A stretch of DNA of 64,000 nt, taken from assembly GCA_029953675.1 (NCBI GenBank), contig JAMWBK010000010.1, positions 1,626,455 through 1,690,454 of the forward strand. Reading direction: 5' to 3'. Position numbers and translations under genes: made by a program. The notes beneath the pieces are model-generated. The model searched no databases and had not been told where the DNA came from. It was given only the letters and a program-made list of their open reading frames with translations. Below, in pieces: positions 26,461 through 63,796 of the stretch. The DNA is from Rhodosorus marinus CCMP1338 (Eukaryota; Plantae; Rhodophyta). The number at the start of each line of letters is the position of its first letter. Position 1 is the stretch's first letter.

Positions 26461-28199
26461 CAAAATAATAGAATGCTCAGTCAAGAAGAACCGTTGCTCT
26501 CGGTCCGTCCATCAATCGCCGCGCGTTCCAGTGCAGAGTTTAAAAGTCAAAAAATTCTTCAATTAGCAGCCTTCGAATATAGCATACCCCATAAATCCAC
26601 ATCCAGTAACACAAGGTTGAGGAACAGAAGAGTCTCTGTTGCAACCTGACATGTTGCAAACGCTTCCCCTTCGCACTATGCTTCTCTTTGCAGAGGACTG
26701 CCAGAGACGCTGGTCTTCACTCTCGTCGGGGACCACGCCAAAGTTTCTCGGTGAACTCTAAGTGTTCCGCAAAGTTTCTACTTTATACGCTTGTATTTTA
26801 TTTACGCGGAGCTTAGACACCTCAGAATAGCACAGTGCATGGGTTGTTACTAAAGTACACCAATCCTAGAGCCCCCGCGCACAAACTCAGCTGAGCCCCA
26901 CAACCTAGTCAGCGAAACACCTCTTAAGCTCCCCCCCGGATGCCCCTTCTCACCTCGACACCGAGTGTGAGGAGACAGCCCACTGCGTTAAGCGAGACTT
27001 TTTAACCTCCACAAGACAAGAACAGACTTGCCTCTGGCTTGGCCATGCGGCCGGAAAGAATTCTCATTCGATAGGTGCCCAGAAAATTATGAAATATTGC
27101 TAGTGTGCGTGTCGAATTCTAAGAGGTCGCCGACAGCTATTGCTGGAGATGACACACGGAATATTCCAAAAGAAAGATTTTTGCCCTTATTTTGAGCCTT
27201 GGTATTCCTGATTTTCAGTGTCGTCCAGCAAAAACACGCAAAAACCCAGACTAGCGCAAACGGGGTTTTCTATTTGAAGTACTGACAAGCGCCTTGTAAA
27301 TATGCAGAGACCAACCGAAAACTGTTTAGAAAAAAACGCTCTCTTCGCTCTCGCGCTGTGCGCTCAGAAGTACTCGTGTAGCGTGTACTAGGCTTCTAAA
27401 AGCTGTGCTTTGATAGCGCGCGAGAAAATCGACGCTCTTATTTAATCATTTTTGCTTTTCGTTTGAACCCGGAACAGCAAAATTTAGCGCTCATTTTCCA
27501 ATTTTAAGGGAAGCTGCGTGTTTCTTGAACTCGTGGGCCAGGATGATTTGACAGCTCAGAGCCTTCGTATACTGATTAAATTGGTTCCGTCGTCTGGGAT
27601 GGCGGTGGGGTTCCATCGCGCCAGCCAACAGCTTGGAATTGTGCATCTTATTGTTCTCGATACATTCAATCTTTTCTGATTACTTTAGGACCAGCGAAGT
27701 TCGGGCGACTTGCGCCAATATATATACCCCGCGCATGAGAGCACGCGGCTGCGGTGTAGAAATGGAGCACCATTTCTACACCACAGGGACGATTTTGTGG
27801 AAAGCTACTGGTCGCTGGACTTCTGGGTTTGGAGACATAGATATTAAATGAAACTAGTTTTTTGGAAGACGCATCTAGATAAATTCAGAGGCACGCTGTT
27901 CCTTAAAAATGATGAACGCAAGGAAGTGAAGTATGGGCTGGAGTACTTCAAGGTTCGGTGTCACGGAGATATCAGTTTCTTGTGACCTTTTGCACTACGA
28001 ACCCGCGGTCAAAGTAAACTTCAGGGCGCGAGCAATGATTTGTTAAACAAGTAGCTGCAGTTTCGATTCGCTATTTTGCACTTGTTGCAAGAGTCCCCTA
28101 CTATGCCTGCGTTGCTCGCCCGTAACTGTGTCCTTTGCTGGGCAACTGCCTAATGCAGCGCAAACACTATTTCGATCACTATCTAGGGAAAAGGCCGGG

Positions 28200-31100
28200 C
28201 TTAAACCCACACCCCGGGATCTCTAGCTACGATAAAATATCCCCAGAAAAAACGGAATCAGCTCAAGGTCCCACTGATCCACACGAAGAGCTGCTAATGC
28301 AAGCTCTGCGTTCCCTTCCCTAAGCGTCTTGTTTATCTAAGCGCGTACATTGCTAAGCTCATCGATCTTTGTCAGCTTATGAGTGTATCCATCGCACAGG
28401 AACTCCTGCGTTATCTCTCCCCCGTCCAAATGTCTAGATCGCGATCGGTATGAATGTCGGTATCGTCCGGGTGCTCAATCGCCATTGCGTCCTTGCAATG
28501 TGTAAGTTTTCAGCACTCAGTGTGCTTGGTTGCAAGTCCGTTTGTTTCTCGGCTCCTTGGAAGCTGTCTGGGCTGTAGCGGCGAGACCACGGCACACCAA
28601 TTGCGAATCTCTGTGACGTTCTTGTGGATGGCCACCAGCTCGGGGCCTAGATTGTAGTTCTCAAGGCAGTTTGTTGGTTCTTGTTCGACCTCCCGGAATT
28701 ACCATCGGATAAGCCACTGCGCCACCTCTGGCATATTGTATTTGGTGTCATCTTTGCCGCAGTCCGCTCGATGTCTGACAGCGGTGGATTCTTTGTACAC
28801 CGTTCGTAAGGCGTTTACTACTATTGCCCGTATTTCAGCGTCCGCAGTCGCGGAGTCGGGAGCCCCAAAAGTTCCGCATTCCCGGTCCGCTCAATTTTCT
28901 CCGTCCAAGGTGAGGAAAACCTTGTGTACAAACCTACGGGGGAGCGGATTCGGGCCCTATTTTCGTTGGTAAATTTGAGGCATTAAAGCGTGCGCCGAGA
29001 TGGAGGCGGCAGAGAACACTCTGTTGATCAGCGTTCTAATCTGAGTGTAAGGTCCCCGAATGAGGCATTCTAGGAAGTGCGTTGAGAGCGCGCCTCCAAA
29101 ACTAGTCCAGCACTACAGAGTATTTGATTGTGCACAGTTCTGTTGAACATTGCTGGCGTCGGGGTTTGCCTGTCGTTGTCGGGATTGAAGCTTCCAGGGT
29201 GCGTTGTTCGCAATTGCGCTAAAGGTAGGACCAATGCCCTTGATTGCTTTGGAAAGTATTGACCCGTCCAGTGTAGAATGCAATCAATAGGTTGGGTTCG
29301 TCGTCTCTTTCCAAATCCCAGGCCGCCCCATCTGCATGGGAGTACCACTCGTTTCCAAGGCGGTTGAGTGCCATTCCGGTCCTCAGCAGTTGTTTGGAAA
29401 CAACACAGCAGCCTTTCTAGATGTAGCCTCACCAACGAGTCCGCTTCGCGTGCCAGTGTGCGTCCAAATTGAAACGCCAGCGTTCGCTGTGTATAGTCTG
29501 GGCGAGTTTCAGAGCAAAAGCGGAACAGGGCAGTTGCGCGCTCAGTTCCTGGTGGGAGAAGATGTGCAATCTCCTCGAAGAGTTTGGTTTGTGTCCCAAT
29601 CGGGTTGGAGTGAATTGTCAGCCTTCTCTTGAAATTTCCACGTCTGCCATATCTCGGGTGACCAGTCTCGGGAATCCAGGTGATACCTGAGTAGTGAGAA
29701 CCCCCACTTCTGAGGTTGCAGTTGGGCTCCGATGGTCGGTAGAGTCCTCTGGCTCCAGATTAGAATTGGGGCTTAGGGCTAAGGCATGTAGGCCGGGTTT
29801 AAGAGGGTTCCCCTTGTACCCCGGTGGTGGCCTGCAGGCGTAGGCGGGCTTTACCCTCCTCTTTCCGCGGTAATCTTGGCTATAGTTGCCAGGACATGGC
29901 TATTGTTCGCATCTGCCCGAAGAGCTCGCGTAATAAACTCCTCCGCCTTTGCGACGTTCTCAGTTCTGTATTCCAAAAGTCCGAGCGCATGATAAGTTGC
30001 CGCGTTGTGAGGGTCAACCTTAATGCCTCGCGAAAAGTTACCTTCCGTGTCTTTTTGACACTAGCCAAAGAGCGTAGGGGATTCTTCACAGTGGTTGCAT
30101 ACCCCCGCCGGTAGACGGCTCCAGTTCCGGATAGTGGTGGTCGACGAGTTGCTTATCGATGCGACAATCGATCTGGTTGAACACGTTGGCCAGGTCCAGC
30201 CTGCGTACTGCCGATTCTGGTTCACAGAACAGATGAGCTTGGATGACATGCATTGACTTGTCGCATGCGCCACTTACTGCAAGTTGGAGCGGTACTAGTA
30301 CTCTCGGAGTCACTATGTATCCGAACTGAAGACCTACCGTGCGCCAGCTTCCGGTGGACCTCTGGGACTCCGATCGGGCGAACTGCAGGCCTCACTGGTG
30401 GTGGGCTGGTGGTAGAAGGCTTGACGAATGGCAGTAGCGACTGCTGCGCAAGGCCCTAGTGAGGACTTCCGGAAATCGCTCTGGTGCGGTTGAAAGTTGG
30501 GTTATGAAGCGTACGAGGTGTCGTTGTACCTGACCGTTGAGCGCCCATGGGTATTTTTAACGGAGCCCATTGGACCCGAGGCTCTTGGCCTTAGGCGGGC
30601 GTGCCAGATTGCGAGGAGGCCCTCGTCAACAGCTTCGCCAGCCCACCACCTGCCTCTGAGCTTGCCGTGCCTCCGGTTAGTAAGGTTCTTAGGTTCTGCG
30701 TGAGGGGCTCCGATAGCGGGATCTCCTCAGGGTCCGGGAGCAGATCTTCGAGCTGGTACCATGTATCAGAGTTTGGGTTGCCAGTTCCGAGGCCATGAAC
30801 CCGTGTGCTGCGTCAGAGCGTCCGCCCAGGTGCGCGAGCTTCAGGGCTTGTTTCCGGCGCAAGCGTACTTGGTGCATGGAAGTGTCTAGATCCTGGGTCT
30901 GTGCAGCGGGCTTCGGCCGCGCCGCATGTTCCTCTGAGACCGTACAAACCGTATGGAATTACCGTAACCTCGTGGAATTCTGTACTGCGAGAGCACCTGT
31001 CCCGTTCGGCTCGTTCTGAACGCCCGACGAAGGCTTTAACTCGATAAGATCCTCCAGACAATTCCAACTAGGGAGCGAGGTCCGGACACAGATTCGGATA

Positions 31101-31200
31101 GTCTGGGGTACTTCAGAACGCCCTGAATTCTGCTATCTCTACCCTTACTGAAGTGAACCATGCAAGCCCTCTGTTCGGGCCGCGCGGTCAAAGCCCTCTT
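28200..31200 (-). mobile_element. Degenerate, internally deleted family A REL non-LTR retrotransposon
   Basis: Fragments are collinear with ORF2 at 54221-57034 (KQALKLAHLG, RPIGVPEV, LPCRWGGLGFG, RPELVAIHKNVT-like REL end). The RT core is partly missing. Confidence 0.85.
29853..30036 (-). other. 184-bp copy of a coding segment of the neighbouring HCF107-like gene embedded in the retroelement
   Basis: Matches 32685-32868 in the same orientation, with 2 mismatches seen. Confidence 0.92.
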
Positions 31201-31209
31201 TCTAGGCTT

Positions 31210-31253
31210 TAGAGCTAATTGACCCAGACTAACGTAACCCTAGAGCTAATTGA
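31210..31253 (-). mobile_element. 18-nt micro-insertion of the family A terminal motif with a 13-bp target-site duplication
   Basis: TAGAGCTAATTGA-CCCAGACTAACGTAACCC-TAGAGCTAATTGA. Confidence 0.85.
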
Positions 31254-31476: not shown

Positions 31477-33591
31477 CTAATCAATCAATCCAAGATCAAG
31501 GCGAGTCTGCGGTGCACGGAAGTCGATGAGATCAACTGAGAATTCCTCTGCTTCGTCTTCGTCTTTGTATTCGTCAACATCCTCATCTTCGGAGGTCTCC
31601 CCCTGACTTTGTCGTTGGATCGGAATGGCTCGAACAGGCTTTTCACTCAAAATTCTTTGCTCTCTCGATGTTGCCTCGTCTCTGTTGCGCAGTGTTCTCT
31701 TCTTCCTCTTTTCTATGCTCACCCTTAGGTCCTGTTCCGTTGTCCATAACCCTGTGGATGCGAAGTCCCCAGATTGGGGCTCTCCAAGCATAACGCGGTT
31801 GTCACTAATGAGTGCCGCCTCAATCGAACGCTGAAAGATTATCTCCGCTCGCGAGGTCTCTCCATACTTGCTCTCGCATGCTTCGTAGCTCCTCCATATA
31901 AGCGGGTTCGAAGGCTCCCTCTGGACAGCTTCCTCAAACAGCTTCCGGCTTTTGAGCATACTCCCAGCCTCAGCCTCAACTCGACCCCAGGCGCAGAAAA
32001 TCCTTGTTGAGTGAGGGTTGGCTTCGAGTCCATATCTGGAGAGCGACAATACAATTGAGGTCTCAGCTTACGGCTACCTCCGCGAATCTGAAACTGGACC
32101 CAAGGCATTTCACAAGCCGACTCACCGAAAGTACGTTTTTGCCCGCTCTATCTCTCCAATCTGTCTTTCGTAAGCTCCCCATGCATGCCATATCCTGTCA
32201 ACAAATTTTGACTTGGGGTTTGCCCATACACCTTGTTGAAACAACTCTCGAGCTACATCTGTATTCTCAAGTCTTGCCTCCATCAAGCCCCATGCTTGCC
32301 AAAGCGGGCAATGCTTTGGTTGTTCCCGTAGTCCTTCTTCAAAGTGACCACGCGCTGCTTCATAGTCTCCCTAAATAAATAGTGTTCCGTAAAACACGTC
32401 GAGAGTGAGTTTATCAAAAGTTGTAGTTCGCAGACGCGAGCGCAGGAGAGGGGATTCGTTCTGCACTACAAAGCAAAAAGCTACCCAAACGCATTCTTGG
32501 GTCTCATCCAGGCAGCACATTTGTTGCGAAAACATGCGCGGTTAGCCGGCCCAGTGATGCCAAGTCTGATTCTGGTGAGCGCAACCTACCTCTTTGATTG
32601 CAAGCATTCCTAGCATCTGGTGAATTACCGCGTCCCTCGGACCTCGGGAACGGCCACGAAGCAGGAGAGATCGCGCTCTGCGCGACCCTCCTCTTTCCGC
32701 GGTAATCTTGGCTATAGTTGCCAGGACATGGCTATTGTTCGCATTTGCCCGAAGAGCTCGCGTAATAAACTCCTCCGCCTTTGCGACGTTCTCAGTTCTG
32801 TATTCCAAAAGTCCGAGCGCATGATAAGTTGCCGCGTTGTGAGGGTTAACCTTAATGCCTCGCGAAAAATACTTGCGAGCCAGTTCTGTGTTGCCATGTG
32901 CATATTCAAGTTCACCCCAAACGTGCCACAAGTAATAGTTTCGGGAATCCGCCTCCGTTCCAGTCCTAAAGCACTGTCTCGCGCTGTCAACGTCGTTGTC
33001 TCGACTCTGATAAAAGAGACCCAACGCAACCCATGAAGCAGCATGCGCTGGGTTAGCTTCACAGGCTTGCAGATACAGGCTCTTAGCTCGGGAGTAGTTT
33101 CCAGTACGCTCTTCTAGTACTCCCCAAGCCTGAAGTAGATGAGAATTTCTCCTGCAGAACTGCAAGGCATTTGCAAAAATCTTCCTAGCCTCAGAAAACC
33201 GTTCCAGGCGCATTTCAAGACGAGCCAGCCCCATCCATCCTCTTCCATCATAGGGTCGCAGTTTTATACACTTAACGTACAGTTCTTTGGCCAGGTCGTG
33301 ATTCGATTGCCTTTGAGCGTTTCTTGCCCAGTAAAAAACCAAGTCAACATTAATCTTTAGGACCTGGCCAGGATGCAGGTCTGGACTGTCTCCTCCCTCC
33401 GTTACGAGGTAATAATCCTGCGCCACTTCCTCGAGGTGTTTCCTATTCAGACCGAACAAAACCTCCCCATCGTTCCTCTCAAAAACAAACCTTGCAACCC
33501 GTATCCGTTTATCTCTGGCCGAACAGCAGCGCAATGTTTCGCTCGGCACCGTCGAGACGGATCCTGAAACATTAACGAAGGAACCATGCAT
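31477..33591 (-). CDS. HAT/TPR-repeat RNA-binding protein, HCF107/Mbb1-like; multi-exon
   Basis: Repeated half-a-TPR units (RPYDGRGWMGLARLE, NSHLLQAWGVLEERTGN, NYYLWHVWGELE, HSTRIFCAWGRVE) and an acidic tail. Confidence 0.75.
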
Positions 33592-35369
33592 GCCTGAATT
33601 ACCCTTGAATAACCTTCACAGGCATGTCATAAAGAGCTCCTCATTCCACGCAGAAGGTTCCAGCTAATCATCCTGCTACCGCCTTCAACAGGATTGCTCC
33701 TTAAGAAAATTCTCCCTCACCGTAGTCTTGTGACCCCGCAGTCTTGCGCCCGCGCCCTGCATTGCTCAAAGCAGACAAGTGAACCATCGGAATGGACAAA
33801 GGAAGCAGGTCGCATCTTGCGGTGGTCAACCGAGATGATCATCGTTTTTCAATTGTTTTTCGTATGTTCACGATCACTGGCTCTGACCAGCACGAAACGA
33901 GGAAAACGTGGTTTGTTTATGACTTAAATTTCTTAATACAGGCTTGATCAATCATTTTCGATCGAACTTGTCATTAATGGCTGATGGTGCCGTATTTGGT
34001 GCTTCAGTTTTCACAAAACAGTGTACTGTCGAAGCACCGCAGAAACGGAAGGAGTCGAACCGGGATTGCGAGAAAGCTCTTTGAAATGGGTGCACTTCTG
34101 CTACATGGTACAGGTCAAGGACGTTTTGTTGTCAGTCTGAACCACGACATCCAGGCAGTTTAGTATTCTGAGCTACTTGAAGACGCTGGCGAAACCGCAG
34201 GGGAAAAGCAGCTACTGCCTCTAGGTCTTCTCCCTGGTGTGCAATATCTAAGCTAATTGGCTATGCTCCACAACGCAAATCGTCCCGTTACCTGTTAGGG
34301 CACACTACTTCAAGGATTCTCCAGAAAAGCTAATATCCTCCTCTGCTAGTCCAAAAGCTTTTCCTGAAGGAACTGACCTTCTTGCATCGTCATCCTCTCA
34401 TTCCCCGGCTTCCGTTGAACAACGGCATCATGAAATCAGTCTTCCAAAGAATATGCTTAATAAACAAGAGTCCTCAATGGACATGCTCCGCATTATTGCC
34501 GTCATCTTGAATCCCGTAAATCTTATATGCTTTAGGCCTGCAACGATAAAAATTACCTACCAACCATCTTCACTCATGTGCTCGTCATGATCACCAAACC
34601 GTCTGCACAGTCTTGCCCTGCTACGAGCACTATCGAGAGGCCTATGCAGAAATTAGAACGCTACACCAAAATTACAACATATCGTAGAAAATAAGTTCCT
34701 CATAAAACTTGGGATAAAAGTGTTCGAATCAGTTACGCTCCAAATCAAAGGTTTAAGCTACACACACTCAAACAGAGAATAATTGAATGAATTGGTTTAA
34801 TAGGGGTTTAGGACAAGTTGGTAAACCCTCGAAAAACAGAGTTTAGGAATGGGTTGTGCAATATCGCCAATGGCCCACGTATTAAAATGCACCTGTTTTC
34901 GGTGGTAAGGGGGGGGTTCTTGAGTTTTTCAAAATCGCACCTGAGGGGAGCGCCGCAGACCACGAACAACCGTGAGGGAAGCTTGGGCGATTGGAAAACA
35001 GTCCGTTGACAGGATGGGGAAGCAGTTCTGCGGAGGTGGTGAAGCATCTATAGAAGCTTCTACATAGCCTTAGCACCTCCCACTCCGCTTGCAGTCCTAA
35101 ACCTGAGGGTTTCGGCAGTAATTCGAACTGGCTTTATTAGCCGAACAGGACAAGGGATCCACATGGTATGGATAGAAGGGCTACTCAAGTAGCTCGACTC
35201 GGGCTTTGGAGCATTCCCCAGATTGCGGATGAGTAAATATTTCTTGCAGGAAGTGAGATCATCGTTCTTTTCACAAGAGCATTGGAAGGCCGAGGGGGAG
35301 TCATGAAATATAAGCTGAGGTAGCAAGTCCTAGCTTGTGAACGTCCCGTCTTTGGGGAGCCCGCATTTT

Positions 35370-35584
35370 ACTGGTTTTTACTAGCATAACCTGAAGCGCT
35401 ACGCAAAACTTGCAAAGGAACTATGAACTAGGGAGGGAAGCGTGCAAACCCAGACGCCGATGGTGCGCCTCGGCAAGCATGCTGCTAGAATATCGCCACA
35501 GGGCGACACTAGTACGTCTTAAGAGTCCCTAAGTATTCAGTAGGATGCTCAGCGAAACATTTCCGCAACCACTTCAAACCCGAT
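35370..35584 (-). mobile_element. 5'-truncated 3' end of a family B element
   Basis: Reverse complement of about 48900-49100, ending in a GCTAGTAAAAACCAGTAAA tail variant. Confidence 0.85.
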
Positions 35585-35589
35585 CGGGA

Positions 35590-36470
35590 TTGTCGCTCCC
35601 GGGTGTACGAACACTTAGTACGTGTACGATCTGTTCACAACCACATGACGCTGCAGGGATTCAACGCCTCCATCCATCACGTTTATTCGCCTCCATCACT
35701 GCACCAGCTCTACAGAGAGCTGGACACTTCGGCACAACATGGTCAGGGACGCACTGGCGACACTGCTGAGACAATGGCGACGAGAAGTGACAGTAGACCT
35801 GACTGGACACTACCAAGGCAGTCGGCTCCGCCGTGACATCCTAGCTCGACACCCACGAACCGGCAAGCTCTGCGTGATCGATGTGAAGGTGACCTCGCCG
35901 CTGCAAAGAACACACCTACACAAAGCGTCTTGGGAGACCGAGTATGCGGTCACAAAGCGGAAAAATTTAAAGAGTCCAAATACTGTGCCAGTATCGGGGA
36001 ACACGATGACGACGTCTTCGTACTCATCTGTCTGGAAACATTTGGGCAGATGGGAAAACAAGGCAGTGAGCTCATGAAGGAAGTGACTGTACACCTGGAT
36101 AAGCGGGAAACGCAGGTGAGTGATGCTCGGGCGATCTTGAACCGCACTCTGTGGAAAGGAAACGCTATCCTGGCCACCCAGGCACGTCGTGTCGACGAGG
36201 CAGACTATGAAATCGTCCCTATCTATGAATGTGGCCACACAACACATTAAGGGTTTCTTTGCTGACCAATAGAATCCTTATTCCTTCTTAATGGGCTCCA
36301 ATAGGGAGCTCTTCAGTAAAGTGTACACGGTTATCTTCCCTAGATAGTGATAGAACTAGTGTTGCGCTGCATTAGGCAGTTGCCCAGTAAAGTCTACAGT
36401 TACGGTTACGTTAGTCTGGGGTATAGTCTGGGGAATTTGACGTTAGTCTGGAGTAGTCTGGGTTGACGGT
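35590..36470 (+). mobile_element. 5'-truncated family A-type element (REL domain, 3' UTR and reiterated TAGTCTGGG tail)
   Basis: RDILARHPRTGKLCVIDVKVTSPLQ...CLETFG. The 3' UTR aligns with the minus strand of 53860-53930, then GTTACGTTAGTCTGGGG and variants follow. Confidence 0.85.
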
Positions 36471-36964
36471 TAAGGGGGCTAACAAGCACAAAGAGAAGGC
36501 GAGGTTTTAGTAAGGAAAGCTTCATGATCGAGAAGAAGATGCTGGGACCGTACCCAGAACCTCCACGCCACCCGGGCACCAACGGCCCTGGCTCAGGCGA
36601 AGAGGGGATGGCGACACCGAATCGGAGTCGGAGGCCAGAACCGTGCGGCAGGACCACAAGCACCCAGGATTTAGGAGCAGCGAACACCCAGGAGGCTTAC
36701 AGGATGGAGACTCAAGAGGTAACTGGACCTGCGGCAGCCTTTTTGCACCAACTTCGCGCCTTCGACCGGCGCTATCAGGACTTGGGAATTGGTGAAGCAA
36801 TTACCGCGCAGTTCTACCAGGCTGTATTCAAACTCTACTCACGGATTAACAGCACCACTGAACTCGAAGGAATTACCGGACGGGTCTGCGAGCTTTCAGC
36901 AAAACCTTATATGTGGCACGGTGGAGCCGCAGCACTGAACCCCTCCCAACTCCTGCAAGATCAC

Positions 36965-37762
36965 GAGGCGTCACACTCGCCTCAAGTACATCCTCAGCGA
37001 ATTTTTGACTCGGATAAGGCATACGGTTGAGGTTGAGTCGGAACTGCCCAGATCAATCTCGGACTCTGCACCGCCCCGTTGTATAGCCGATCTCCTCGTC
37101 TCCGACGCTGCTGCCAGACGCTAAACATATGTGGACCTTGCGATTACCTTCCCCGTGGCCAGCGCCCACCTCACCGCAGCCGCCCGCCGCCGGGGGGCCG
37201 TGGCTTCAGCCCTTCGAAGAGTTAAGGAACGACGGTATGCTGAGAGCATGGCCAGTCTGCCTTGCGCTGAGGGTCGCTCTCACCGGTTCCAGCCATTCAT
37301 TGTGGAAAGCTTTGGTCACGTCGATAAGTCGGGTTTAGAGTGGTTGCGGAAATGTTTTGCTGAGCATCCTACTGAATATTTGGCGCTCTTGAGGCGTTTA
37401 AGTGTCTCCCTTTGGCGATATTCCAGCGACATGCTTTCCGAGGCGCGCCATCGGCGCCTGGGGTTGCATGCTTCCCTCCCTAGTTATTAGTTCATCTTCA
37501 CGCCTTGCGTAGCGCTTCAGGCTATGCTAGTAAAGTCCTAGTAAAGTCCAGTAAAGTCCTACTGAATATTTGGCGCTCTTGAGGCGTTTAAGTGTTTCCC
37601 TTTGGCGATAATCCAGCGATATGCATTCCGAGGCGCGCCATCGGCGCCTGGGGTTGCATGCTTCCCTCCCTAGTTATTAGGTCATCTTCACGCCTTGCGT
37701 AGCGCTTCAGGTTATGCTAGTAAAGTCAGCAAAGTCCAGTCCAGTAAAGTCCAGTAAAGTCC
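36965..37762 (+). mobile_element. 5'-truncated family B insertion with a tandemly duplicated 3' end and a 7-bp TSD (AGATCAC)
   Basis: Near-identical to 48533-49120. A second partial 3' copy spans about 37556-37762. AGATCAC lies at 36958-36964 and 37763-37769. Confidence 0.92.
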
Positions 37763-37858
37763 AGATCACCCGCCGGTGGCGGCCATCAATCAACATGCAG
37801 CCGGAACGCGTCTCAATCAACTTCCGCTCAGGACAGGTGTCACGGTTCCAGTGGACTA

Positions 37859-38163
37859 TTTCACGTCTCCAACAGCCAGCTGGGTATTACTCAAATTATT
37901 CCATATTTCGAGTTTTATTCCCCCCTAATTACTCCCAAATTAGGTAATATATCCCAATTCTATCTTGTTCTTCTCTATCTTCTTCCTCTTCTCTCCAGCT
38001 AACCTGGGAAATATCGAGTTTTGCCCATCGTACTTATACTCTTGCTCCATCGGGATGTGCAATAACTATTAAGCTCAAAAGGGTGTTGCACCTCCAGAGA
38101 TTTTGGCACAGCCCGAGCATAATTTTGCATAGCCGGACATTGCTGGAAGGTGGAGACGTCACA
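37859..38163 (-). repeat. 3' LTR
   Basis: Starts TGTGACGTCTCC after PPT GGTGGGAGGGA and ends GGAGACGTGAAA. Confidence 0.95.
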
Positions 38164-41100
38164 TCCCTCCCACCGAAGAAGAAGCGCGGGGTCGGGCAGA
38201 TTCAGCAGCACGATGAAAGTTCATGTAGTAGCGAATTTGCCTTTTTGTAGCAGAGGTTTGTGGCAACCACTGGTGAGCTGCAATCCATCGAGCATCAGCT
38301 ACTGTTTCCCCCTCGAAGTATACCATATATTCGCTGGTTCCCTCTGGTTTCATCCGATGACCAAGTACGGATGCGATTTCGCCTCCAGTCGCTGCTTCAG
38401 CTACCAACTCGGGTATGTCGGGTTGTACGTTGTCGGGAGAACCGACAAATTTCCTCAGCAGGGAAACGTGGAACGTTGGATGTACCTTCATTTCGGTTGG
38501 TAACTGCAGGGTATAAGCGACATTGTTCACCTTACGCTGGATTCTGAAGGGTCCGATGTATCGAGGTCTGAACGGTTTGGGATCTCGTAGCGGCAAGTTC
38601 GTGGTTGATAAGAGCACCATTTCGTCAGGGAAAAACTCAGGGTCACGCCTTCCCGCGTCGTAGCGGTTTTTCTGTACTTGCTTTGCGTACAACATGTTGT
38701 TCCTTGCTGCAATGTATTGGTCCTGCTGATGTCGTAAAAGAACTTCGGCTGCCTCAGGTAAGGGAGAAACGATAGCCTCCTCTGCACGTGGTACTATTAA
38801 TGTTCCCGGTAGCTCAGGGTTTCGTCCGTACAGAAGTTCGAAGGGCGAATACTTAGTAGATTCCGAGATTTGCGTGTTGTAGACCAACTCCGCCATGGAA
38901 AGATCTGCGGCCCATGTAGTTCGGGTACTGTTGCATCGGAGGTATGTCTCCAACGTCTGATTGACTCGCTCCGTTTGTCCGTCCGTTTGCGGGTGATAGG
39001 CTGTACTCAAATTCGTTCTGACCTTAAGTATACCCATCAGTCGTTGCCAGAATAGGCTGGTGAACTTAGAATCCCGGTCTGAAATTATGGTTCGGGGTAA
39101 TCCCGCGAACCGCACCCAGTGTTCGAAGAATAATTCTGCCGTTTTCGCCGCATCTGCGTCCGTCCGGGTTGGTATAAATTTCGAATATTTTGTGAAGCGA
39201 TCGACAATTACTAGGATTGCATCAGCTCCCGATGTAGTCATGGGAAGACTAACGATGAAATCCATGGTGATGTCCTGCAACTTTGTTTCTGGTACAGGTA
39301 GCGGCTGTAGAAATCCTTGTGATGCCCGGAGTGGTTTCTGCTTTTGGCAGATTTCGCACTTTCCAACCATTGATTGAACGTCATCCCTCATTGTGCGCCA
39401 ATAATAACGTCTCTTCAAAAGGTTGACTGTTTTATGGAGACCGAAATGTCCTCCCGTGGGTTCCTCATGATATCGCCGTAGTAAGTCCGGTACGAATTTC
39501 TGGGGCACACAAACGCGATGATGTTTGTACAAGATGTCCCGCTTTCTACGAAATCCCTGCTCCTCGTACTTCACTGCTTCTGGGTAGACTGCTGCGAAAT
39601 CAGGATCTTGTAGATATGCTCCGGTCCAATCTTCTTGGGATAGTATACCGGAAACCGCCATCTGGTTGATCGCTCCCCGGCTGAGTGGGTCCGCAATATT
39701 TTCCGCCCCTTTCTTGTATTCGATATTGAAGGAAAACGGCATTAAGCGATTCACATATCTCGCTTGTCTCTTGGTAAGCTCCTTTTGCGAGTGTAGAAAA
39801 CGCAAAGGGTTATGGTCGGTGCGAAGCCCAAATCGTTGGCCCTCGACGTACGTCCGCCAATGTAATACCGCTAGGGTCAACGCGTAGAGTTCCCGTTCAT
39901 AAGTGGAATACTTCTCCTCCGTAGTGGTGAACCGCTGTGAGAAGTACGCAATTGGATGTTCTCCATCTTCAAAGGTTTGCAATAACACAGCCCCTACTCC
40001 CTTGTTACTGGCATCAGTACAAATTGTGAAGGTTTTTGTAAAATCCGGATTTCGTAGTACTGGCTGCTGCATCAATTTCTCCCGCAGGGTGTCAAATGCT
40101 TTCTGTTGCTCCGGTCCCCACAGAAATTCTACATTCTTCCTCGTGAGGTTGGTCAGGGGTGCTGCTACCGGGCTGAATCGTGGCACATAGTTACGGAGAT
40201 AGCCCGTAAAACCCAAGAAGGACCTGACATCGTGCACATTTTCTGGGACTTGCCAATTTTTAAGGGCGGCTACCTTGCTAGGATCCGGCCGTCGTCTCCC
40301 ACTCCCAACCAGATGACCCAAATATTTCGTTTCTGGTACACCGAAGACGCACTTTGACCGCTTTGTATAGAGTCGGTGGTTTCTCAGCTTCGAGAAGACG
40401 ATGTCTAGATGTCTTTTGTGGTCTTCCTTATTCGCCGAGTAGATAATAATGTCGTCAAAGAAGATCATGACGAAAACGTTTAACTCGATGAAGAAAATAC
40501 TGTTCAATAGTCGAGTAAACACAGCAGGAGCATTTGTCAGTCCAAACGGCATCACTAACCACTCGTAAAGACCAAATGGCGTCGTGAACGCTGTTTTTGG
40601 AATGTCCTTCTTCTCCACGCGTAGTTGCCAGTAACCACTCCTCAAATCGATCACACTGAGATATGTGGCTTTGCCGAGAGCATCTAGACAATCGTCTATT
40701 CTTGGCGGGCTGGTCTTGTTGAGGATGGTTGCCTGGTTCAGTTTGCGGTAATCGATGCACAATCGCCGCCCACCATCTTTTTTGTCCACAAAAAGACAGG
40801 GTGAAGCAAAAGGCGGTGAGCTAGGTCGAACGAGGTTTTTGCTCAGCAAATCTTGTAGTTGAGTTTTCAGATCCTTCTGATCTGCAAGACTCATTCGGTA
40901 TGGTCTTTGGGATGTTGGTTCAGTTCCCGGTTTCAGATCAATTGTAAAGTTGACGTTTCGCCAAGGGGCCAGGTTCTTAATGTCTTCCACAAAAACGTCA
41001 GCGTATTTATCCGTAATAAATTCCTCCAGATCTTTCGCCTCTTCCAGTCGTTTTTGTGTAAATTTCGTCATATTTTTGATTTCGGGTTCCTCCGTATAAT

Positions 41101-41593
41101 TTTCAGGTTCTGGGTGGTCAGGTTGTTCAGGTTCTACTTCAGGGTTTTGTTCAGGTTCTTCTTCACTGTAATTCTCCCGGTTTTCAGGTTTCTGTTCAGG
41201 CTGAGTGACAAGTTCTTCAGCTTCTTCTGGTTGATTGCTCAGCTTGGCTTCTGGTTTAATGGCTGGATCTGTTTCAGTTTCTTCGGGGTATTCAGGTTCT
41301 TCTGGGTATTCGGGTTCTTTTTCTGGTTTTCCTTCTGGTTTGATAAGTTTATCTTCTGGGTATTCGGGTTCTTCTGGGTATGCAGGTTCTTTTTCTGGGT
41401 TTAACATCAGCAGCTGGTTTGGTAGGTCGAGTCTCGCTTGATAGTAGCTGAGGAAATCTCTTCCCAAATATCCAGGGCTCGTAGCGTCTTCAACTACATA
41501 GGGCTGCCAATCGAAGTGATGACCACCTAGTTGTAGGGTCACGTTGGCTTCGCCCAAGATTTTTATGGATGTGCCCGGCGAGGCCGTGTCCAA
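38159..41593 (-). CDS. pol: Gypsy Pol (protease C-terminal half, RT, RNase H, integrase, chromodomain)
   Basis: RLCIDYRKLN, MPFGLTNAP, IFFDDIII, TDAS, YSTYERELYA, zinc-binding H-H-C-C, SDRD and ERVNQ motifs. The protease active site LVDTGSS lies just upstream (about 41650) in a shifted frame. Confidence 0.95.
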   Translation of the reverse strand: MDTASPGTSIKILGEANVTLQLGGHHFDWQPYVVEDATSPGYLGRDFLSYYQARLDLPNQLLMLNPEKEPAYPEEPEYPEDKLIKPEGKPEKEPEYPEEPEYPEETETDPAIKPEAKLSNQPEEAEELVTQPEQKPENRENYSEEEPEQNPEVEPEQPDHPEPENYTEEPEIKNMTKFTQKRLEEAKDLEEFITDKYADVFVEDIKNLAPWRNVNFTIDLKPGTEPTSQRPYRMSLADQKDLKTQLQDLLSKNLVRPSSPPFASPCLFVDKKDGGRRLCIDYRKLNQATILNKTSPPRIDDCLDALGKATYLSVIDLRSGYWQLRVEKKDIPKTAFTTPFGLYEWLVMPFGLTNAPAVFTRLLNSIFFIELNVFVMIFFDDIIIYSANKEDHKRHLDIVFSKLRNHRLYTKRSKCVFGVPETKYLGHLVGSGRRRPDPSKVAALKNWQVPENVHDVRSFLGFTGYLRNYVPRFSPVAAPLTNLTRKNVEFLWGPEQQKAFDTLREKLMQQPVLRNPDFTKTFTICTDASNKGVGAVLLQTFEDGEHPIAYFSQRFTTTEEKYSTYERELYALTLAVLHWRTYVEGQRFGLRTDHNPLRFLHSQKELTKRQARYVNRLMPFSFNIEYKKGAENIADPLSRGAINQMAVSGILSQEDWTGAYLQDPDFAAVYPEAVKYEEQGFRRKRDILYKHHRVCVPQKFVPDLLRRYHEEPTGGHFGLHKTVNLLKRRYYWRTMRDDVQSMVGKCEICQKQKPLRASQGFLQPLPVPETKLQDITMDFIVSLPMTTSGADAILVIVDRFTKYSKFIPTRTDADAAKTAELFFEHWVRFAGLPRTIISDRDSKFTSLFWQRLMGILKVRTNLSTAYHPQTDGQTERVNQTLETYLRCNSTRTTWAADLSMAELVYNTQISESTKYSPFELLYGRNPELPGTLIVPRAEEAIVSPLPEAAEVLLRHQQDQYIAARNNMLYAKQVQKNRYDAGRRDPEFFPDEMVLLSTTNLPLRDPKPFRPRYIGPFRIQRKVNNVAYTLQLPTEMKVHPTFHVSLLRKFVGSPDNVQPDIPELVAEAATGGEIASVLGHRMKPEGTSEYMVYFEGETVADARWIAAHQWLPQTSATKRQIRYYMNFHRAAESARPRASSSVGGM

Positions 41594-41768
41594 TTTCCGT
41601 GTTGAGTCGGAATTATTGTGGTGGCGTCCGGTCTTCCCCTCAAGACAGAGTGGCTGCTGCCTGTATCGACGAGCAGGGGGGTTACCTTGCCGTTGACCAA
41701 CCCTTTGACTGTCATGTCCCCGTGGAGAGGGATAGGGACGCCTTGTTCAGCAACAGTAACGGCGTCCC

Positions 41769-42545
41769 CTACTGCTGCTCCTCTTTTAACTGCTGGGTTA
41801 AAGGCGGTGCCGACTTCGAGACAGTCAGATCCCGATCAGGGTTGTTCCAGCAGATCCTTTGTGTATGCCCCTTCTTCCCGCAGTAGTTGCAAACAATGCT
41901 GGTGTAGTTACGCTTCTGCAGCGCTTGCGTTCCGGGTTGGTAAATGCGTCCAGACCTGGTTCCCCTGCTTACAGTGGTCTGGGGCGTTGCCATTTTTTGG
42001 GGAAATTTCTCTTCCCGTCTGGAAGGTTGGCTGGCTGCCTCAGCTCCCTCAATTTTTAGGGCAAGTGCCTGTGCCGCCTCAAAATCCTGCACGTCCTGTA
42101 TGTAGATGTATTTCTTGACCTCGGGTTTAAGGCCTTCGACGAAGCGGTCGAATTTCTCTGAATCAGAAATTTCTCCAACCTGGATCAGACATTTGTTGAA
42201 ATATGCGGAATATGCTGCTACACTCGTTTTCTGCTCTGCCCGTGCGAGTTGCTGTTTCGCGCGGATATTAGCGTCTGCTGGGTAGAATTGCGATTTTAAA
42301 GCATCCTCAAATCCGGCGTAGCGCGTGGGTTTTTGCGATTCAGGTATCAGGGACCACCAATACGAAGCGTCGCCAGTGAGATAGCCCTCTGCGAGGGTAA
42401 TCTTGTAGTCGTCGTCGTCGTCAGGCAGACGAGCCAACTTAAAATACGTTCTCAAGCTGTTCAGGAACGTAGCAATGAGCAAAGCGTCGCGTCGCCCGTC
42501 ATAGGCTTTCGGTTGCGGGGCCTGGATCTTGATGAGTGATGCCAT
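41769..42545 (-). CDS. gag: Gypsy Gag with CCHC zinc knuckle
   Basis: Retrotransposon gag motifs (YLTGDASYWW, FVEGLKPE) and CNYCGKKGHTQRIC. Confidence 0.93.
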   Translation of the reverse strand: MASLIKIQAPQPKAYDGRRDALLIATFLNSLRTYFKLARLPDDDDDYKITLAEGYLTGDASYWWSLIPESQKPTRYAGFEDALKSQFYPADANIRAKQQLARAEQKTSVAAYSAYFNKCLIQVGEISDSEKFDRFVEGLKPEVKKYIYIQDVQDFEAAQALALKIEGAEAASQPSRREEKFPQKMATPQTTVSRGTRSGRIYQPGTQALQKRNYTSIVCNYCGKKGHTQRICWNNPDRDLTVSKSAPPLTQQLKEEQQ

Positions 42546-42640
42546 CTGCTGTTTGTCAGGTTTTGGTTCTCAGGTTCACTGGTTCTAGTAGTACTGGGCT
42601 CACTTTTCAGGTTCGCATAATGGTTCCTCAATCGCAACTT

Positions 42641-42652
42641 GCGATGAGACCA
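42641..42652 (-). promoter_or_regulatory. Primer-binding site TGGTCTCATCGC
   Basis: Begins with TGG 2 nt after the 5' LTR; the same sequence follows LTR2 near 3692. Confidence 0.85.
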
Positions 42653-42654
42653 GA

Positions 42655-42959
42655 TTTCACGTCTCCAACAGCCAGCTGGGTATTACTCAAATTATTCCAT
42701 ATTTCGAGTTTTATTCCCCCCTAATTACTCCCAAATTAGGTAATATATCCCAATTCTATCTTGCTCTTCTCTATCTTCTTCCTCTTCTCTCCAGCTAACC
42801 TGGGAAATATCGAGTTTTGCCCATCGTACTTATACTCTTGCTCCATCGGAATGTGCAATAACTATTAAGCTCAAAGGGGTGTTGCACCTCCAGAGATTTT
42901 GGCACAGCCCGAGCATAATTTTGCATAGCCGGACATTGCTGGAAGGTGGAGACGTCACA
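42655..42959 (-). repeat. 5' LTR
   Basis: About 99% identical to 37859-38163 by manual comparison. Confidence 0.95.
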
Positions 42960-44445
42960 GACTACGTAGCGGCCTTCCCAGTCATCGGGAATGGCAGTAC
43001 ACAACCTACCTACGCTGAGCGCAAGGCTCAGAATGCCTCAGTGCGCGGAAAGCAGCACAAACCCGCACAGTAGTAACCCCAGGGCCGCAGACCCAGCAAG
43101 TTGCCGTGAGACATCAGCACGCTACGGTGGGAGGAGCTATCTGGGGACCAGAGACTACACCGGTCCTCGCCACGCTCAGGAATGTACGACCCCCGCGGCA
43201 GGATGAAGTGGCCCCATCAGACTTTGCAACGGTTCTTTTGCCAAGCATTGGGGATCCCGAGCTCTTATCTCTTATGTGGTGCACGAGGACTTCATTGCTT
43301 CCCACGCCAGCCCTATATGCCACCCAGACGCAATCCCGCTTCTCTAAAGCGCCATTACACGGGGAGTTTTAGGACAGGGATTTTCGGATCCATTTACCCT
43401 GCGACACCCCGATCGGGAAGTGACCCTGTCAACTGGCCAGGCGCCCGAGGCCGATAACCTACTGGGATACAACGAACGCCAACGCATCGCACAGGCGGAC
43501 ATCGCGGCCCAGTCACTGCAGAGGACCATCGAGCAGATTATTCGCGTCCGTTCGAGGCTTCGCAGGATGCATCTCTCTTTCAATACTCTCGCGGCACTAC
43601 ACGAGTATCTGGACACAGCTAGCGGTACTGGTTTTTTTTTTGTTGGCTGAGTTGGGCGCGATTGAGTTTGTTCGAGATTTTGGTGTGGGCCGCCATCTTT
43701 CTGCGGCTGTTACTCGCCTTTCCCGGCGTCTCCGGGTCGTTCGCGAAGGGTTTTTTGGGTGGTTTTGGTCTGGGAAGGTGGTTCCGGTAGGGGATTGGTT
43801 TATTTTTAGTGTTGGTGTTTTGCGCGGCGATATTTCGGTCATCGGCAGTGCTTGTGGGGTAGAGCTACTTGATTGGCTACATTCGGTGTGGTAGGTGTAA
43901 ACCCAGACATATGTGCAGACCGCAGACTATGTTGCAGAGCCATATGATGCCTCTTAAGGCTTCACGAAGAGCCAGAAACTCAACCACACGGGTTGAAGTT
44001 GCGTTCAGTCTGCTGCATTGCTGGACAGCTTTGGGGGTCGGTCTGTGGACGTGCTCGGATTCGCATACGCAGATGAGGTACTGTACTTGAAAGCATTAAG
44101 GGTTGACTACCAATCAACTAGGCTCCAGTTCGAAATGATGTACTTCTCTGTCAGGTACCGAGCAGGAGCAAGTCGCACGTGTCTACTGAGGAGTACCTGT
44201 GCAGCTTCCGTTGGATTCATCAAAAATAGTAACTTAGTCATTGGCAGGATGGTAGGTGCTGGAAGGGTTATCTGGGTCACCTAATCAATCTGGGGTTTTG
44301 TTTCTTTTTCGGTCGCGAGCGTGTTCGTTTACGGGAAGCACTTCCTCTGGTACGCCTTCCCCTCGATTTTCCGCGGTGCGTCGTTTGCTTTTGCCACTAC
44401 TTCTGTCTTCCGGGTGGGTGTGTTGCGGGGCCTTTCCTATTTGGG

Positions 44446-45948
44446 TTGGGTTTGGTCGATTATTCTCTCGGTGCGGTTTCATATTGGTGGTGCAACGTTT
44501 CTTTTGCGCATTCCCTCAGGATGGTAGGGATATCTCCGCGCTCGACGGAGCCTCCTCCCAAGGAGGCACTGCCAGGTGGGGGACTCTGTGTTCGCCTCAG
44601 CTGCGGCACGTTTTCTTCCGAGGTTGACTTGGAAGGCGCTTCTGGCACCCAGGCGCGTGCACTTATCTCCGCTGTCACCAGCCTGATCACGGCTGCGAGT
44701 GATCGTGGAGTGCTCCCTCAGCTCACCCAGAAGCTAGGTGGGCTGGAATCGGGATTGGTGGCCAGGTCAAATTCAAATTCGGACGAGAATTTGAATTGCC
44801 CCAGAGTGGCAGCGTTGGCTGAAGGCAGTCAACATCCGGTCAATCAACATGAACCTGTCCCGGGACAGGCGAGGGCTGTTGCTTCTGCGCGGGACAGTAC
44901 GACGTTGGGGAGCGGCAGGCCGGGCCAAAACGCGCTTCAGCGCTCGGGGACTCGAGGCAATGGTGGTGGTGACTGTGCGGCAACCGGTGTGGAGGAGACT
45001 GCAGCTGTGGACTTCCCTCTCTTGGACCAGCCCTCAGGTGGTCACCAGCTCCCGGCTAATGCGGGGGCACGTGGTGGCCGCAAGGGGGGCGCTTCGTACG
45101 CATCAGTCTTGCGGAAGGGCACCACTGCCACACGTACGGCGGCTATGCTCCGTTTCATACCATCTCGCGACCCTCAGGATGGACCTGTGGAGACCACTCT
45201 CCAATTTCTGTGGGTGCGAAATGTCCGGCCCCAGACTACACGAGGACAGGTTCCGTCTATGCGAGACTTCCGGGACACTTTTGCGGAATCGTTAGGGTGC
45301 AGCCGGGGTGATTTCTTCTTCGCAAACTATGAGGGCCGCGACGTGCTGTTTTTGGTCTCCGCAACCGCCGCCAAGTACCTGGAGGCCTAGCTGGCGAAGC
45401 CTACCGAGCAGTGGCCTGAGAGCGCCCGGTGGCCTGAGAGCGCCCGGTGGCTGCGCTGCAACCCGCAGGTGGTTTTGCACTTGGATTTTGACCGTTTCTC
45501 GGGCAATTTCCTGTCTCCGGGAGAAACGGCAGGGCTCTCTGAGCATGAGAGCAGCGTGAAGGCGGCAGCGATCCATTGGCTACGGATTCAGCGCCTTGAG
45601 AGGATCTTGTTGGAGCGGTTCCGGTCGGGCCCTCGTCACCTGCGCATGGCGGTTTCCAGTTTCCTCGATCTGGAGAGGCGACTTGTGCTGACTTCGCGCT
45701 ACAAGACAGAGCTGCAGCGGGTGGGGATTTTGGAGGGCTCTGCTTCCAGCACTACTTCCAGCGAGAGTGGTGAGGCAGGGGAGCAGACTGAGGGCATGGC
45801 GGTGGTGGACGCCCAGGTTACTTTGCTGAAGCCCGCGGGATCCGTTCCGCGAGCCTCGCGGAGTGGGCGGCTCACGACCTTGGTGCGGATAGGAGGTAAG
45901 AGAGCGAGGACCGACTCCCCCGGGTCTAAGGGGGAGAAGCACGATTAG
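44446..45948 (+). pseudogene. Family B ORF1, with one in-frame TAG at 45388-45390
   Basis: 44446-45390 and 45469-45948 are in the same frame. LWVRNVRP...DFRDTFAESLG aligns with family A ORF1. There is an in-frame 18-bp duplication near 45412-45447. Confidence 0.7.
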
Positions 45949-45979
45949 CGCTCCAGGCACGGCTGCGAGGTCGCAGCCT

Positions 45980-48900: not shown

Positions 48901-49057
48901 TTTAGAGTGGTTGCGGAAATGTTTTGCTGAGCATCCTACTGAATATTTGGCGCTCTTGAGGCGTTTAAGTGTCTCCCTTTGGCGATATTCCAGCGACATG
49001 CTTTCCGAGGCGCGCCATCGGCGCCTGGGGTTGCATGCTTCCCTCCCTAGTTATTAG
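45980..49057 (+). pseudogene. Family B ORF2 (RT, CCHC, REL endonuclease) with two frameshifts
   Basis: GRCPGPSGLR, DFRNAFNSV, GVQQGEPCG, AYHDD, LPLRLGGFG, CQGC-x8-H-x4-C, RRHT, IADL, YVDL and FIVESFG motifs across ORFs 45980-46882, 46858-48099 and 47990-49057. Confidence 0.92.
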
Positions 49058-49499
49058 TTCATCTTCACGCCTTGCGTAGCGCTTCAGGCTATGCTAGTAA
49101 AGTCCAGTCCAGTAAAGTCCAGTATGAGGGGGGAAAGAACGAAGTCCCCAACGTAGTCCCTAGCCTCGGTTTTCAACGGCTTTGCTTTAGGTAAATGGAT
49201 ACTGCAGGGGAAAACATTCCATCCGCATTTCATGTCGCTCTCCCCCCACCCCAGACTGATATTCAATTTTGTCCTGCGAAGCGCCTAACGGCCATGATGC
49301 AATGATACTCCCCCCTTATAAACCGTTTGTCTCCAATCGTTGCTTGCCGGTTTAGGTTTCTAGCTGTAGAGTATGCATTTGGATGCTGGAGGCGGGATCT
49401 TCGTTGTGCTTTGCTTAGCCTGCTTTTTCCGCTCACATGTCTTTGTTTCAGTCCCCGAGGAGACTGAAAATCCATTTCATTTGTTCTTGGAACAAAAAA

Positions 49500-52733: not shown

Positions 52734-53460
52734 ACGTTTAGAACGAATCACGGAGGCCTTGAGTCCATCAGGACTGGTTTTCCTTCAGAAAAACGCGCTT
52801 GGGGTTATTCCATGCTTTACAAACGGAGGGATAGTGAGCGTGTTGCAAACGGCTGACAAGTTGCACCAACCTCTATGCGTTCTTTATGGTAGAAGCCCGT
52901 CAGAGCTGACGACGAAATATGCTCTTGTGAGGAGGAACAGTGCCCGTCGGGTACCTGCTCTAGGCTCGGTTTTACCCCGTGTTACTTCTCCACTGGAGCA
53001 CGTTGCAACAACCAAGCTGTAAGTCTAAGGAAAAGCTCAAGCTCCGTTTCCAGAACAATTCTGACAGAAGAGTGCATCCGTTTCTACTTGGACCTCGCGG
53101 GCATCTGTGCGTCTACTAACCTCGTCTAGTTTGGATTTTCGGGCTTTGTGGGAAATACTTTATTCGGATGCGATTGCTGCAATCCGGGGACCTCGTGTAT
53201 TGACGAACAGACTGACTGGTGTGTCCTCCATAGCGAATTTCCTTGCCCTGGCTCATCTGTACGTGACGAACCTCCGACTTTGTGACACTCCTGCTCACGA
53301 TTTTGCTCTCGTTGTGGACGCACTTTTCTTCCACCTTCGACGATAACGGAGTCGGCCCTTTTTCTTCCTATGTCCCTCTGCCTTAGGTTGCATTCGCCGG
53401 GAACAGAGGATTCTGCACGTGCCTTGAGCCGTAACGGAGGATCCTGCACGTGCGCCTCGT

Positions 53461-53495
53461 AAAACTTCACTTGGCAGCTGCCTACTGCAGACTAG
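53461..53495 (-). repeat. Isolated fragment of the family A 3' UTR
   Basis: The minus strand CTGCAGTAGGCAGCTGCCAAGTGAAGTTTTAC matches the 3' UTR near 53865-53895. Confidence 0.7.
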
Positions 53496-53944
53496 CGTTT
53501 ACGACTAGCGTAAAACTGTACCTTTTACGTATGCGGAAACACTCCAAAACAATGCAGTTGGTTTCGTAGGTTTATCAAGAAAGCCGTGGAGTGTATTTCT
53601 TCACCCGTAGGAGCTACTAAGGCGACTTCTATTTGCACAAGAAGATAGAAGTGTATTCAAGGGGTCCCTATTGCTACAAGAAAGCATGCGAGATAGAGGC
53701 TTATTTAGAGACGAGAGTGTTTGTCCTAAGCAAGAACAACACAGCCAACACATAGCATTGGCCATGGTTGCCATTTCAATCCGATAAAAAATTATCCGAT
53801 TTCGTGTGTAAGTATGGGACTTGAATGTCGTAATACATATGTAACTGTAATCTTTGCAGTAACCGTAAACTTTACTGGGCAGCTGCCTACTGCAGTGCAA
53901 CACTACCTCTAATCCTATCTAGGGTGAAGTGTACTGGAACTCCG

Positions 53945-58618: not shown

Positions 58619-58714
58619 ACTTGTAACTTTTTATCACCTTTTTCCGTCGTTTTCCACAAACAAAGCCGTCCAAAACCCCAGACTAACGTAACGCAAACAC
58701 CCGAGTGCCAATTG

Positions 58715-63780: not shown

Positions 63781-63796
63781 CCGAATATCGGAAGAA

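Follow-up and report, generated by a model that had tools for sequence, protein, structure and literature searches.

A 17-nt sequence, GTTACGTTAGTCTGGGG, recurs in a 64-kb stretch of the genome of the red alga Rhodosorus marinus. It is interpreted here, with moderate confidence, as the tail unit that forms the 3' terminus of the RNA in one lineage of LINEs (the A lineage), so that its solo copies would be aborted insertions and the copies in front of element heads would come from template jumping. Most likely the motif is a tidy case of known LINE behavior and not a new system. The 17-mer would then be a convenient tag for one LINE lineage, and its copies a natural record of initiation stutter, aborted insertion and template jumping, steps that are as a rule observed only in in vitro work with R2 protein. 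Although CRE-like LINEs account for about 9% of this red-algal genome, the sole description of them so far is an entry in a RepeatMasker table.

Genomic setting and occurrence of the motif

The whole stretch analyzed, called the window below, comprises the last 64 kb of the 1,690,454-bp contig JAMWBK010000010.1 in the genome assembly of R. marinus CCMP1338 (GCA_029953675.1; PMC10250338). In the RepeatMasker table of the genome paper's supplement, LINE/CRE is listed with 4036 copies that cover 2.82 Mb, or 9.04% of the genome (PMC10250338). From about 28 kb on, the window is an island of LINE/CRE-type elements nested in each other, together with one Ty3/gypsy LTR element (Table 1); both strands carry elements, and orientations are mixed. 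The contig terminus (window position 64000) falls within a repeat that recurs at 59469-59657 with 94% identity, and no telomere repeat was found at this contig end, so it is one of the unfinished ends of the assembly. The Ty3/gypsy element has 306-bp LTRs that are 99% identical and a 5-bp target-site duplication, GACTA; since it sits in A2 ORF1, A2 predates that insertion. Perfect or near-perfect tandem repeats are present at 3281-3356 (39 nt), 17581-17681 (31 nt) and 59053-59202 (51 nt), outside the island or at its edge.

Table 1. Motif copies and elements located in the window
Feature	Position	Strand	Description
Motif copy 1	8451-8467	-	Solo; 8 nt downstream of the host CinA/NMNAT-like stop codon
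Motif copy 2	31223-31240	-	Solo 18-nt insert GGGTTACGTTAGTCTGGG
Motif copy 3	36405-36421	+	Continuous with A1 3' module and tail: ...AAAGTCTACAGTTACG followed by GTTACGTTAGTCTGGGG
Motif copy 4	58676-58692	-	Directly 5' of the A3 5'UTR
Motif copy 5	63523-63551	+	12 nt of A-tail-like sequence (TCTACGTTACGG) ahead of the 17-mer
A1	35585-36404	+	5'-truncated A-type; frameshifted RLE C-terminus and conserved ~70-nt 3' module
A2	36463-43626	+	Intact 5' end; 5'UTR 36463-36523, ORF1 from 36524
A3	53841-58675	-	Full-length; 5'UTR, ORF1, ORF2 (54221-57034), 3' module
E1	28119-31110	-	5'-truncated A-type; tail end ...CACAGTTACGG, without motif
A5	53448-53530	-	Relic of A-type 3' module, without motif
Family B, full-length	43627-49123	+	Tail (CCAGTAAAGT)n; comparison family
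Ty3/gypsy LTR element	37858-42959		Inside A2 ORF1; 1144-codon pol ORF

The recurrence reported in the original prediction was confirmed. Four exact copies of GTTACGTTAGTCTGGGG are present in the window (copies 1, 3, 4 and 5; in copy 5 the 17-mer itself occupies 63535-63551), and a copy with one mismatch lies at 31222-31238(-). These 5 matches with at most one mismatch compare with 0.01 expected, and 5 were reached in 0 of 100 shuffled sequences. The contexts at 36405 and 58676 had also been described correctly, the latter copy being placed 57 nt upstream of the ORF1 ATG by measurement. The sample for motif contexts consists of these 5 sites and two A heads in one 64-kb window.

Three of the five copies are solo or nearly solo, and two solo copies begin at the identical base. 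The GG of an A tail precedes copy 2 at 31240, and copy 5 abuts an antisense, 3'-truncated A-like ORF2 fragment (63554-63805) that is cut at its ETFG motif. The host gene next to copy 1 (8475-9782(-)) is CinA/cytidylyltransferase-like, and its product shares 84% identity with a protein from Rhodosorus marinus. The solo and near-solo motifs, three in all (8451, 31223 and 63535), each lie downstream of host-like genes and in gene-sense orientation, at 8, ~350 and ~95 nt past the stop codon; this shared placement is not significant, and such sites may be tolerated or preferred.

Behind copy 3, the motif is reiterated at 36422-36462(+) in the order TA, TAGTCTGGGG, AATTTG, ACGTTAGTCTGGAG and TAGTCTGGG. 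These units are 5'-shortened and all retain the 3' part of the motif; they are followed by the 5'UTR and then by the ORF1 ATG of A2 at 36524.

The short form TAGTCTGGG occurs 12 times in the window against 0.39 expected, and 7 of these occurrences fall inside the five 17-mer copies or the units at 36422-36462. The other five are located at 27245, 29494, 31099, 45230 and 59397. Those at 31099, 59397, 45230 and 29494 were rejected as motif insertions, being antisense Pro-Gln-Thr codons of element coding sequence (4 of the 5); at the position equivalent to 59397, the paralogue D has CCTCAAGCTAG. The partial hits at 31099 and 59397 had originally been listed as motif occurrences, and this part of the list is withdrawn. 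A further partial motif, GCTACGTTAGTCTG at 49636, was discarded as an insertion in the same way, being within element coding sequence. The remaining occurrence, at 27245(-), is outside element DNA; the sequence behind it, TTTTTGCGTGTTTTTGCTGGACGAC, faintly resembles the A3 5'UTR.

Family A elements and their termini

Judged from its coding sequence, family A consists of real LINEs with a restriction-enzyme-like endonuclease. The original assignment to REL retroelements held, as ORF2 carries both RVT_1 and the REL core spacing. The 937-codon A3 ORF2 encodes RT and REL core and matches Pfam RVT_1 with E=4.6e-08, above the curated cut-off; the same profile also matches family B ORF2, and weak sequence matches in the PDB are all to LINE-1 ORF2p RT. 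The published REL core consensus, RH[DN]-x19-33-E-x9-21-[RK]PD-x12-14-[DE] (PMC12857005), was found by regular expression in A3 ORF2 at 54323-54478(-) as RHD..E..RPD..D; the other copies are frameshifted. Upstream of the RHD, the strict CCHC knuckle pattern C-x1-3-C-x7-8-H-x3-4-C has no match in A3, and variant knuckles are seen instead: C-x2-C-x12-H-H in A3 and C-x2-C-x13-H-C in the sister element L002. Family A is called CRE-like here after the LINE/CRE label, which comes from the RepeatMasker call of the genome paper. Protein searches for paralogues of the host gene, A ORF2 and B RT returned none from the CCMP1338 assembly; evidently, the element ORFs are not among its called genes.

Several family A copies are damaged or interrupted. 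The ORF1 of A3 is frameshifted, with 57034-58272 as its longest open piece. A2 contains two insertions, a family B array (36963-37765) and the Ty3/gypsy element, and it ends at the full-length family B head (43627). A1 directly adjoins, on its left, a family B 3' fragment in inverted orientation (35355-35584(-)). The two 3' fragments meet head to head with tails outward (35355-35584(-) and 35585-36421(+)), and the junction looks as if both ends of one break had been primed on different RNAs. In E1, a 184-nt stretch of the RT region (29853-30036) is 98.9% identical to 32685-32868 in a neighboring host TPR/HAT-repeat gene (aa ~242-303) and occupies a spot where other ORF2s show no homology; its appearance suggests templated repair or gene conversion, with a donor 2.8 kb away.

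A ~70-nt 3' module, CCCTAGATAG...GGCAGYTGCCCAGYAAAG...ACRGTTAC(GG), is common to four A-type ends. Past this module, A1 runs into GTTACGTTAGTCTGGGG, and E1 and A5 run straight into unrelated DNA. The A3 tail has ...GGTTAC and a reiterated 18-nt unit, TGCAAAGATTACAGTTAC, and then passes into unrelated DNA without TTAGTCTGGGG. Bases 1-6 of the motif (GTTACG) are the ordinary A tail end; thus, only the 11-nt TTAGTCTGGGG part is special, and among the four A-type 3' ends this extension is confined to A1. The modules of E1 and A1 are ~93% identical, as estimated by eye from the alignment. E1 has a motif (copy 2) ~100 nt upstream, with target-site-duplication sequence in between. The 3' half of the motif (GUCUGGGG, 36414-36421) can pair with the invariant CCCUAGAU (36338-36345), with which the 3' module begins, and this pairing would close the module as a panhandle; the folded RNA of the 3' module is not more stable than its shuffled versions (z=0.58).

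At the 5' side, the motif stands directly before both full-length A heads (2 of 2), which begin with TTGACGG at 36463 in A2 and with TTTTGGACGG at 58675 in A3. The 5'UTRs of A2 and A3 are strongly diverged by inspection, and the motif before each is identical. No further A heads are present in the window, and no motif stands in front of the 5'-truncated A1. The original prediction that the motif marks family A termini and one clean head-to-tail A junction (36405) is borne out. Its wording that the motif marks both ends was overstated: the motif precedes both full-length 5' ends but follows only one of the four A-type 3' ends.

These termini could also be explained by a terminal redundancy, in which TTAGTCTGGGG would be the true first 11 nt of A and the 17-mer a tail-head junction (GTTACG plus head). 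RNAs made from an array would begin with one head and extend 11 nt into the following one, and the repeat would guide strand transfer like a retroviral R region; A transcripts would not start at TTGACGG or TTGGACGG, which are downstream of the motif. Heads and tails are fitted better by this alternative than by a tail unit. In its favor, TTAGTCTGGGG is found at both full-length heads, the four A tails all end in GTTAC(GG), three of them without extension, and the motif before A2 and A3 is identical despite their diverged 5'UTRs. However, A3 has the head repeat and no 3' repeat, and four units rather than one are present at the A1-A2 junction. On balance, such a redundancy is doubtful. A sister-strain A head in contig L002 no longer lends it support, as nt 1-113 proved to be antisense family B sequence.

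Insertion of motif copies and the origin of the head-to-tail junctions

The motif was inserted at two sites, as seen from the target-site duplication at copy 2 and from the absence of copy 1 in a sister strain. Copy 2 is bracketed by an exact 13-bp direct repeat, TCAATTAGCTCTA (31210-31222 and 31241-31253), which occurs nowhere else in the window; no larger duplication was found around copy 2, the 13-mer alone being common to both sides. This pair is read as a target-site duplication around a tiny retro-insert. A comparison of orthologous empty and filled sites, as proposed with the original prediction, was obtained at one site: the sister-strain contig L014 is collinear with the window on both sides of site 1, across the entire intergenic region, and has an unrelated 36 nt instead of the motif (similarity to the motif not significant, p=0.27).

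Additional information is found upstream of copy 4, where a mosaic (A4, 58693-58927(-)) is composed of an ORF1 fragment followed by an ORF2 'PIGTR' piece. The ORF1 fragment (58927 to 58722, aa ~160-232) has 85% nucleotide identity to A3, and the ORF2 piece of 30 nt, which encodes YSIPIGTRVF, lies between this fragment and the motif. The order of ORF1, ORF2 and motif in A4 and copy 4 is collinear with the A RNA, with large internal skips and with the motif as 3' end. The motif reads as an RNA 3' terminus because all partial copies keep its 3' part, an 18-nt copy has a 13-bp duplication and another copy has 12 extra tail nucleotides. Its behavior as an RNA 3' terminus is thus supported. Even a terminal redundancy would still require RNAs ending in ...TCTGGGG for copy 2, with its duplication, and for the copy at 63523; since motif-ending RNAs are needed anyway, that explanation is less economical.

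The original prediction had offered a dispersed target site as one possibility, and this is not supported. The 3' flanks of A1, A3, E1 and A5 share nothing with each other, which speaks against a dispersed host target. A1 lacks a motif ahead of it, and the motif is itself an insert: one copy has a target-site duplication, and the sister strain does not have the motif at its orthologous site. A known RNA gene target (snRNA, tRNA, 5S or spliced leader) was rejected, as an Rfam search at gathering scores and a tRNA search of the window were empty. Permissive Rfam searches for HDV-like or other ribozymes at the two A heads gave noise only. The 17-mer is absent from the sister-strain Rhodosorus transcript contigs compared, and in the JGI metagenome and transcriptome contigs it occurs only as 10 unrelated singletons. 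A conserved leader or host signal can thus be discounted, and a spliced-leader relic at retrocopy 5' ends was discarded on the same data.

A host-derived unit, akin either to the telomere repeat or to a small host RNA's 3' end and picked up at element junctions, would have analogies in the telomere tracts between MoTeR copies and in U6 fused to L1. The window is a contig end without telomere, and the 3' end of the unit is G-rich, with a loose resemblance to some long yeast telomere units. Moreover, fungal relatives in the CRE clade are telomere-associated (PMC12857005). Red-algal telomere repeats are largely uncharacterized according to a review (PMC7046594), and neither the genome paper nor its supplements report that of R. 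marinus. This origin is very improbable, however: the unit forms no tandem arrays, its boundaries are fixed and not permuted, element orientations are mixed, no Rfam family or tRNA is matched, and the 17-mer is absent from the Rhodosorus transcript sets of the JGI collection.

Under the preferred explanation, a tail unit of the A RNA, the A-lineage RNA would end in ...GTTACGTTAGTCTGGGG, and target-primed reverse transcription would start there. TTAGTCTGGGG would be a short extension in one source lineage and may represent a variant tail unit or a short tag from 3' read-through. Stuttering or re-initiation could have produced the 5'-shortened units at 36422-36462, and synthesis that aborts after ~17-29 nt could have left the solo copies, one of them with its 13-bp target-site duplication. 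On reaching the 5' end of a full-length A RNA and running off, the enzyme may jump to the 3' end of another A RNA; such a jump would place a tail unit exactly before the head and build head-to-tail arrays. Because the jump would happen after 5' run-off, the motif would stand before full-length rather than truncated copies. A transcripts would not start at GTTACGTTAG or TTAGTCTGGGG, and some would end at ...TCTGGGG. That the RNA ends here, and that a jump rather than a targeted re-insertion made the junctions, is inferred. The R2 protein, a model enzyme of RLE LINEs, makes multi-template cDNAs by end-to-end jumping in target-primed reverse transcription (PMC11194090).

Family B provides a comparison for these steps. 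Its tails are (CCAGTAAAGT)2-4; the D tail duplicates ~110 nt and the A3 tail its 18-nt unit, and tail reiteration is the rule in this superfamily, as seen in B, A3 and D. Truncated B copies are stacked head to tail, and the two-unit B stack in A2 ORF1 has one 5-bp duplication (ATCAC) around both units and none between them, so it most likely arose in one integration event. In the sister-strain contig L013 (~1457-1468), compared with window position 46947, a 12-nt insert GTAAAGTCCAGT, equal to one B tail unit, lies within B ORF2, a further instance of a solo tail unit. No B tail unit precedes the one full-length B head (43627), and the window has no solo B tail units, although in this region B is younger than A; the tail-unit explanation therefore does not account for so many very short motif copies.

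Self-targeting, the first option named in the original prediction, was weighed as another source of the junctions: the A endonuclease would recognize the tail motif as DNA and nick just after it, so that new copies land behind old tails. Both full-length copies lie exactly 3' of a motif, solo motifs could be empty targets, and relatives in the CRE clade are strongly site-specific (PMC12857005). On the other hand, 5'-truncated copies would then be expected behind a motif as well; A1 is not, and E1 is so only approximately (~100 nt, with duplication sequence between). No motif bases are duplicated at the A3 3' flank, and 3 of 5 motifs are unoccupied. The family B array, a single event with one duplication for two stacked units, favors junctions by jumping, and self-targeting is considered unlikely. 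In a wider form, that A-lineage LINEs either carry a short terminal redundancy or recognize their own tail, with the 17-mer as a built-in address that places new full-length copies right behind earlier tails, the proposal is doubtful. If true, it would mean a non-telomeric, non-rDNA, self-propagating array system in a CRE-like clade, with an 11-nt repeat that guides strand transfer in the manner of an R region, and would show how a site-specific clade turns its own end into a target.

For the motif as an RNA tail, the evidence counted comprises its recurrence far above chance, the tail continuity in A1, the 12 nt at 63523 and the GG at 31240; the copy 2 duplication, the empty sister site, the partials that retain the 3' part and the order in A4; and the tail reiteration of the superfamily, the solo B unit in L013, the single-event B array and the jumping of R2. 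Against it are counted the presence of TTAGTCTGGGG at only 1 of 4 3' ends and its absence from E1 despite a ~93% identical module. Both full-length heads have the motif, which an integral head sequence would explain without a jump; the B head has no B tail unit, and solo B units are missing from the window. Also counted against it are the start base shared by two solo copies and the sample of only 5 sites in 64 kb.

Relation to known retroelements

In R2 and other RLE LINEs, target-primed reverse transcription, non-templated addition and end-to-end jumping have been described (Bibillo & Eickbush 2004, as cited in PMC11194090; PMC8857657). Family A resembles them in domain order, with a C-terminal CCH(C/H) motif and a PD-(D/E)xK-type endonuclease behind the RT. 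It also shares their conserved 3'UTR module and 5' truncations, as well as junctions with short filler and extra template copies. Unlike R2, it has two ORFs and no rDNA or other fixed target, and in place of a defined 28S junction its tail has a complex unit of 6-17 nt. An AF2 model of the C-terminal third, covering the thumb-linker-RLE region, has a pLDDT of 68; its top PDB match in Foldseek is R2Tg (9dou_A, 292 columns, TM 0.42), which with E=0.72 is not significant.

With the CRE clade (CRE1/2, SLACS, CZAR; MoTeR, Cnl1, FoTeR), family A shares the RepeatMasker label LINE/CRE and the REL core spacing, and its copies cluster and nest in a region that resembles a chromosome end. Known members of that clade target spliced-leader genes or telomere repeats, whereas flanks here are unrelated and orientations mixed; the zinc-knuckle spacing C-x2-C-x12-H-H also sets family A apart. 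No single target of the CRE type was found: the 3' flanks of A1, A3, E1, A5, B and D are unrelated, and no RNA gene was detected in the window. Nor is the pattern that of telomere LINEs (HeT-A/TART, MoTeR, GilM/GilT), as orientation is not uniform and the window has no telomere-type array.

Short reiterated 3' units are known from other LINEs, such as the 8-mer of CR1, the TAA of the I factor, and RTE. Family A is like these in the variable number of its short 3' units and in the very short 5'-truncated copies left behind; it differs in that its unit is longer, is not a simple repeat and is also located exactly before full-length heads. LINE tails of short reiterated units that seed microsatellites are described in PMC2887409.

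Chimeric retrocopies (U6-L1) and 3' transduction are known template-switch and 3'-tag phenomena of L1. As in U6-L1, template switching would join the 3' end of a second RNA to a full-length copy at its 5' end, and as in L1 3' transduction, a short 3' tag would mark the progeny of one source element. In family A, however, the acceptor would be an RNA of its own family and not a host snRNA, and the tag is only 11 nt.

Stacked B-type units repeatedly start at one internal position (CCTACTGAATA) right behind a tail, both in the window (37557 and 37367) and in the sister strain (L013 ~3624 and L002 ~4113). This recurrent start suggests a microhomology-guided jump (CCTA).
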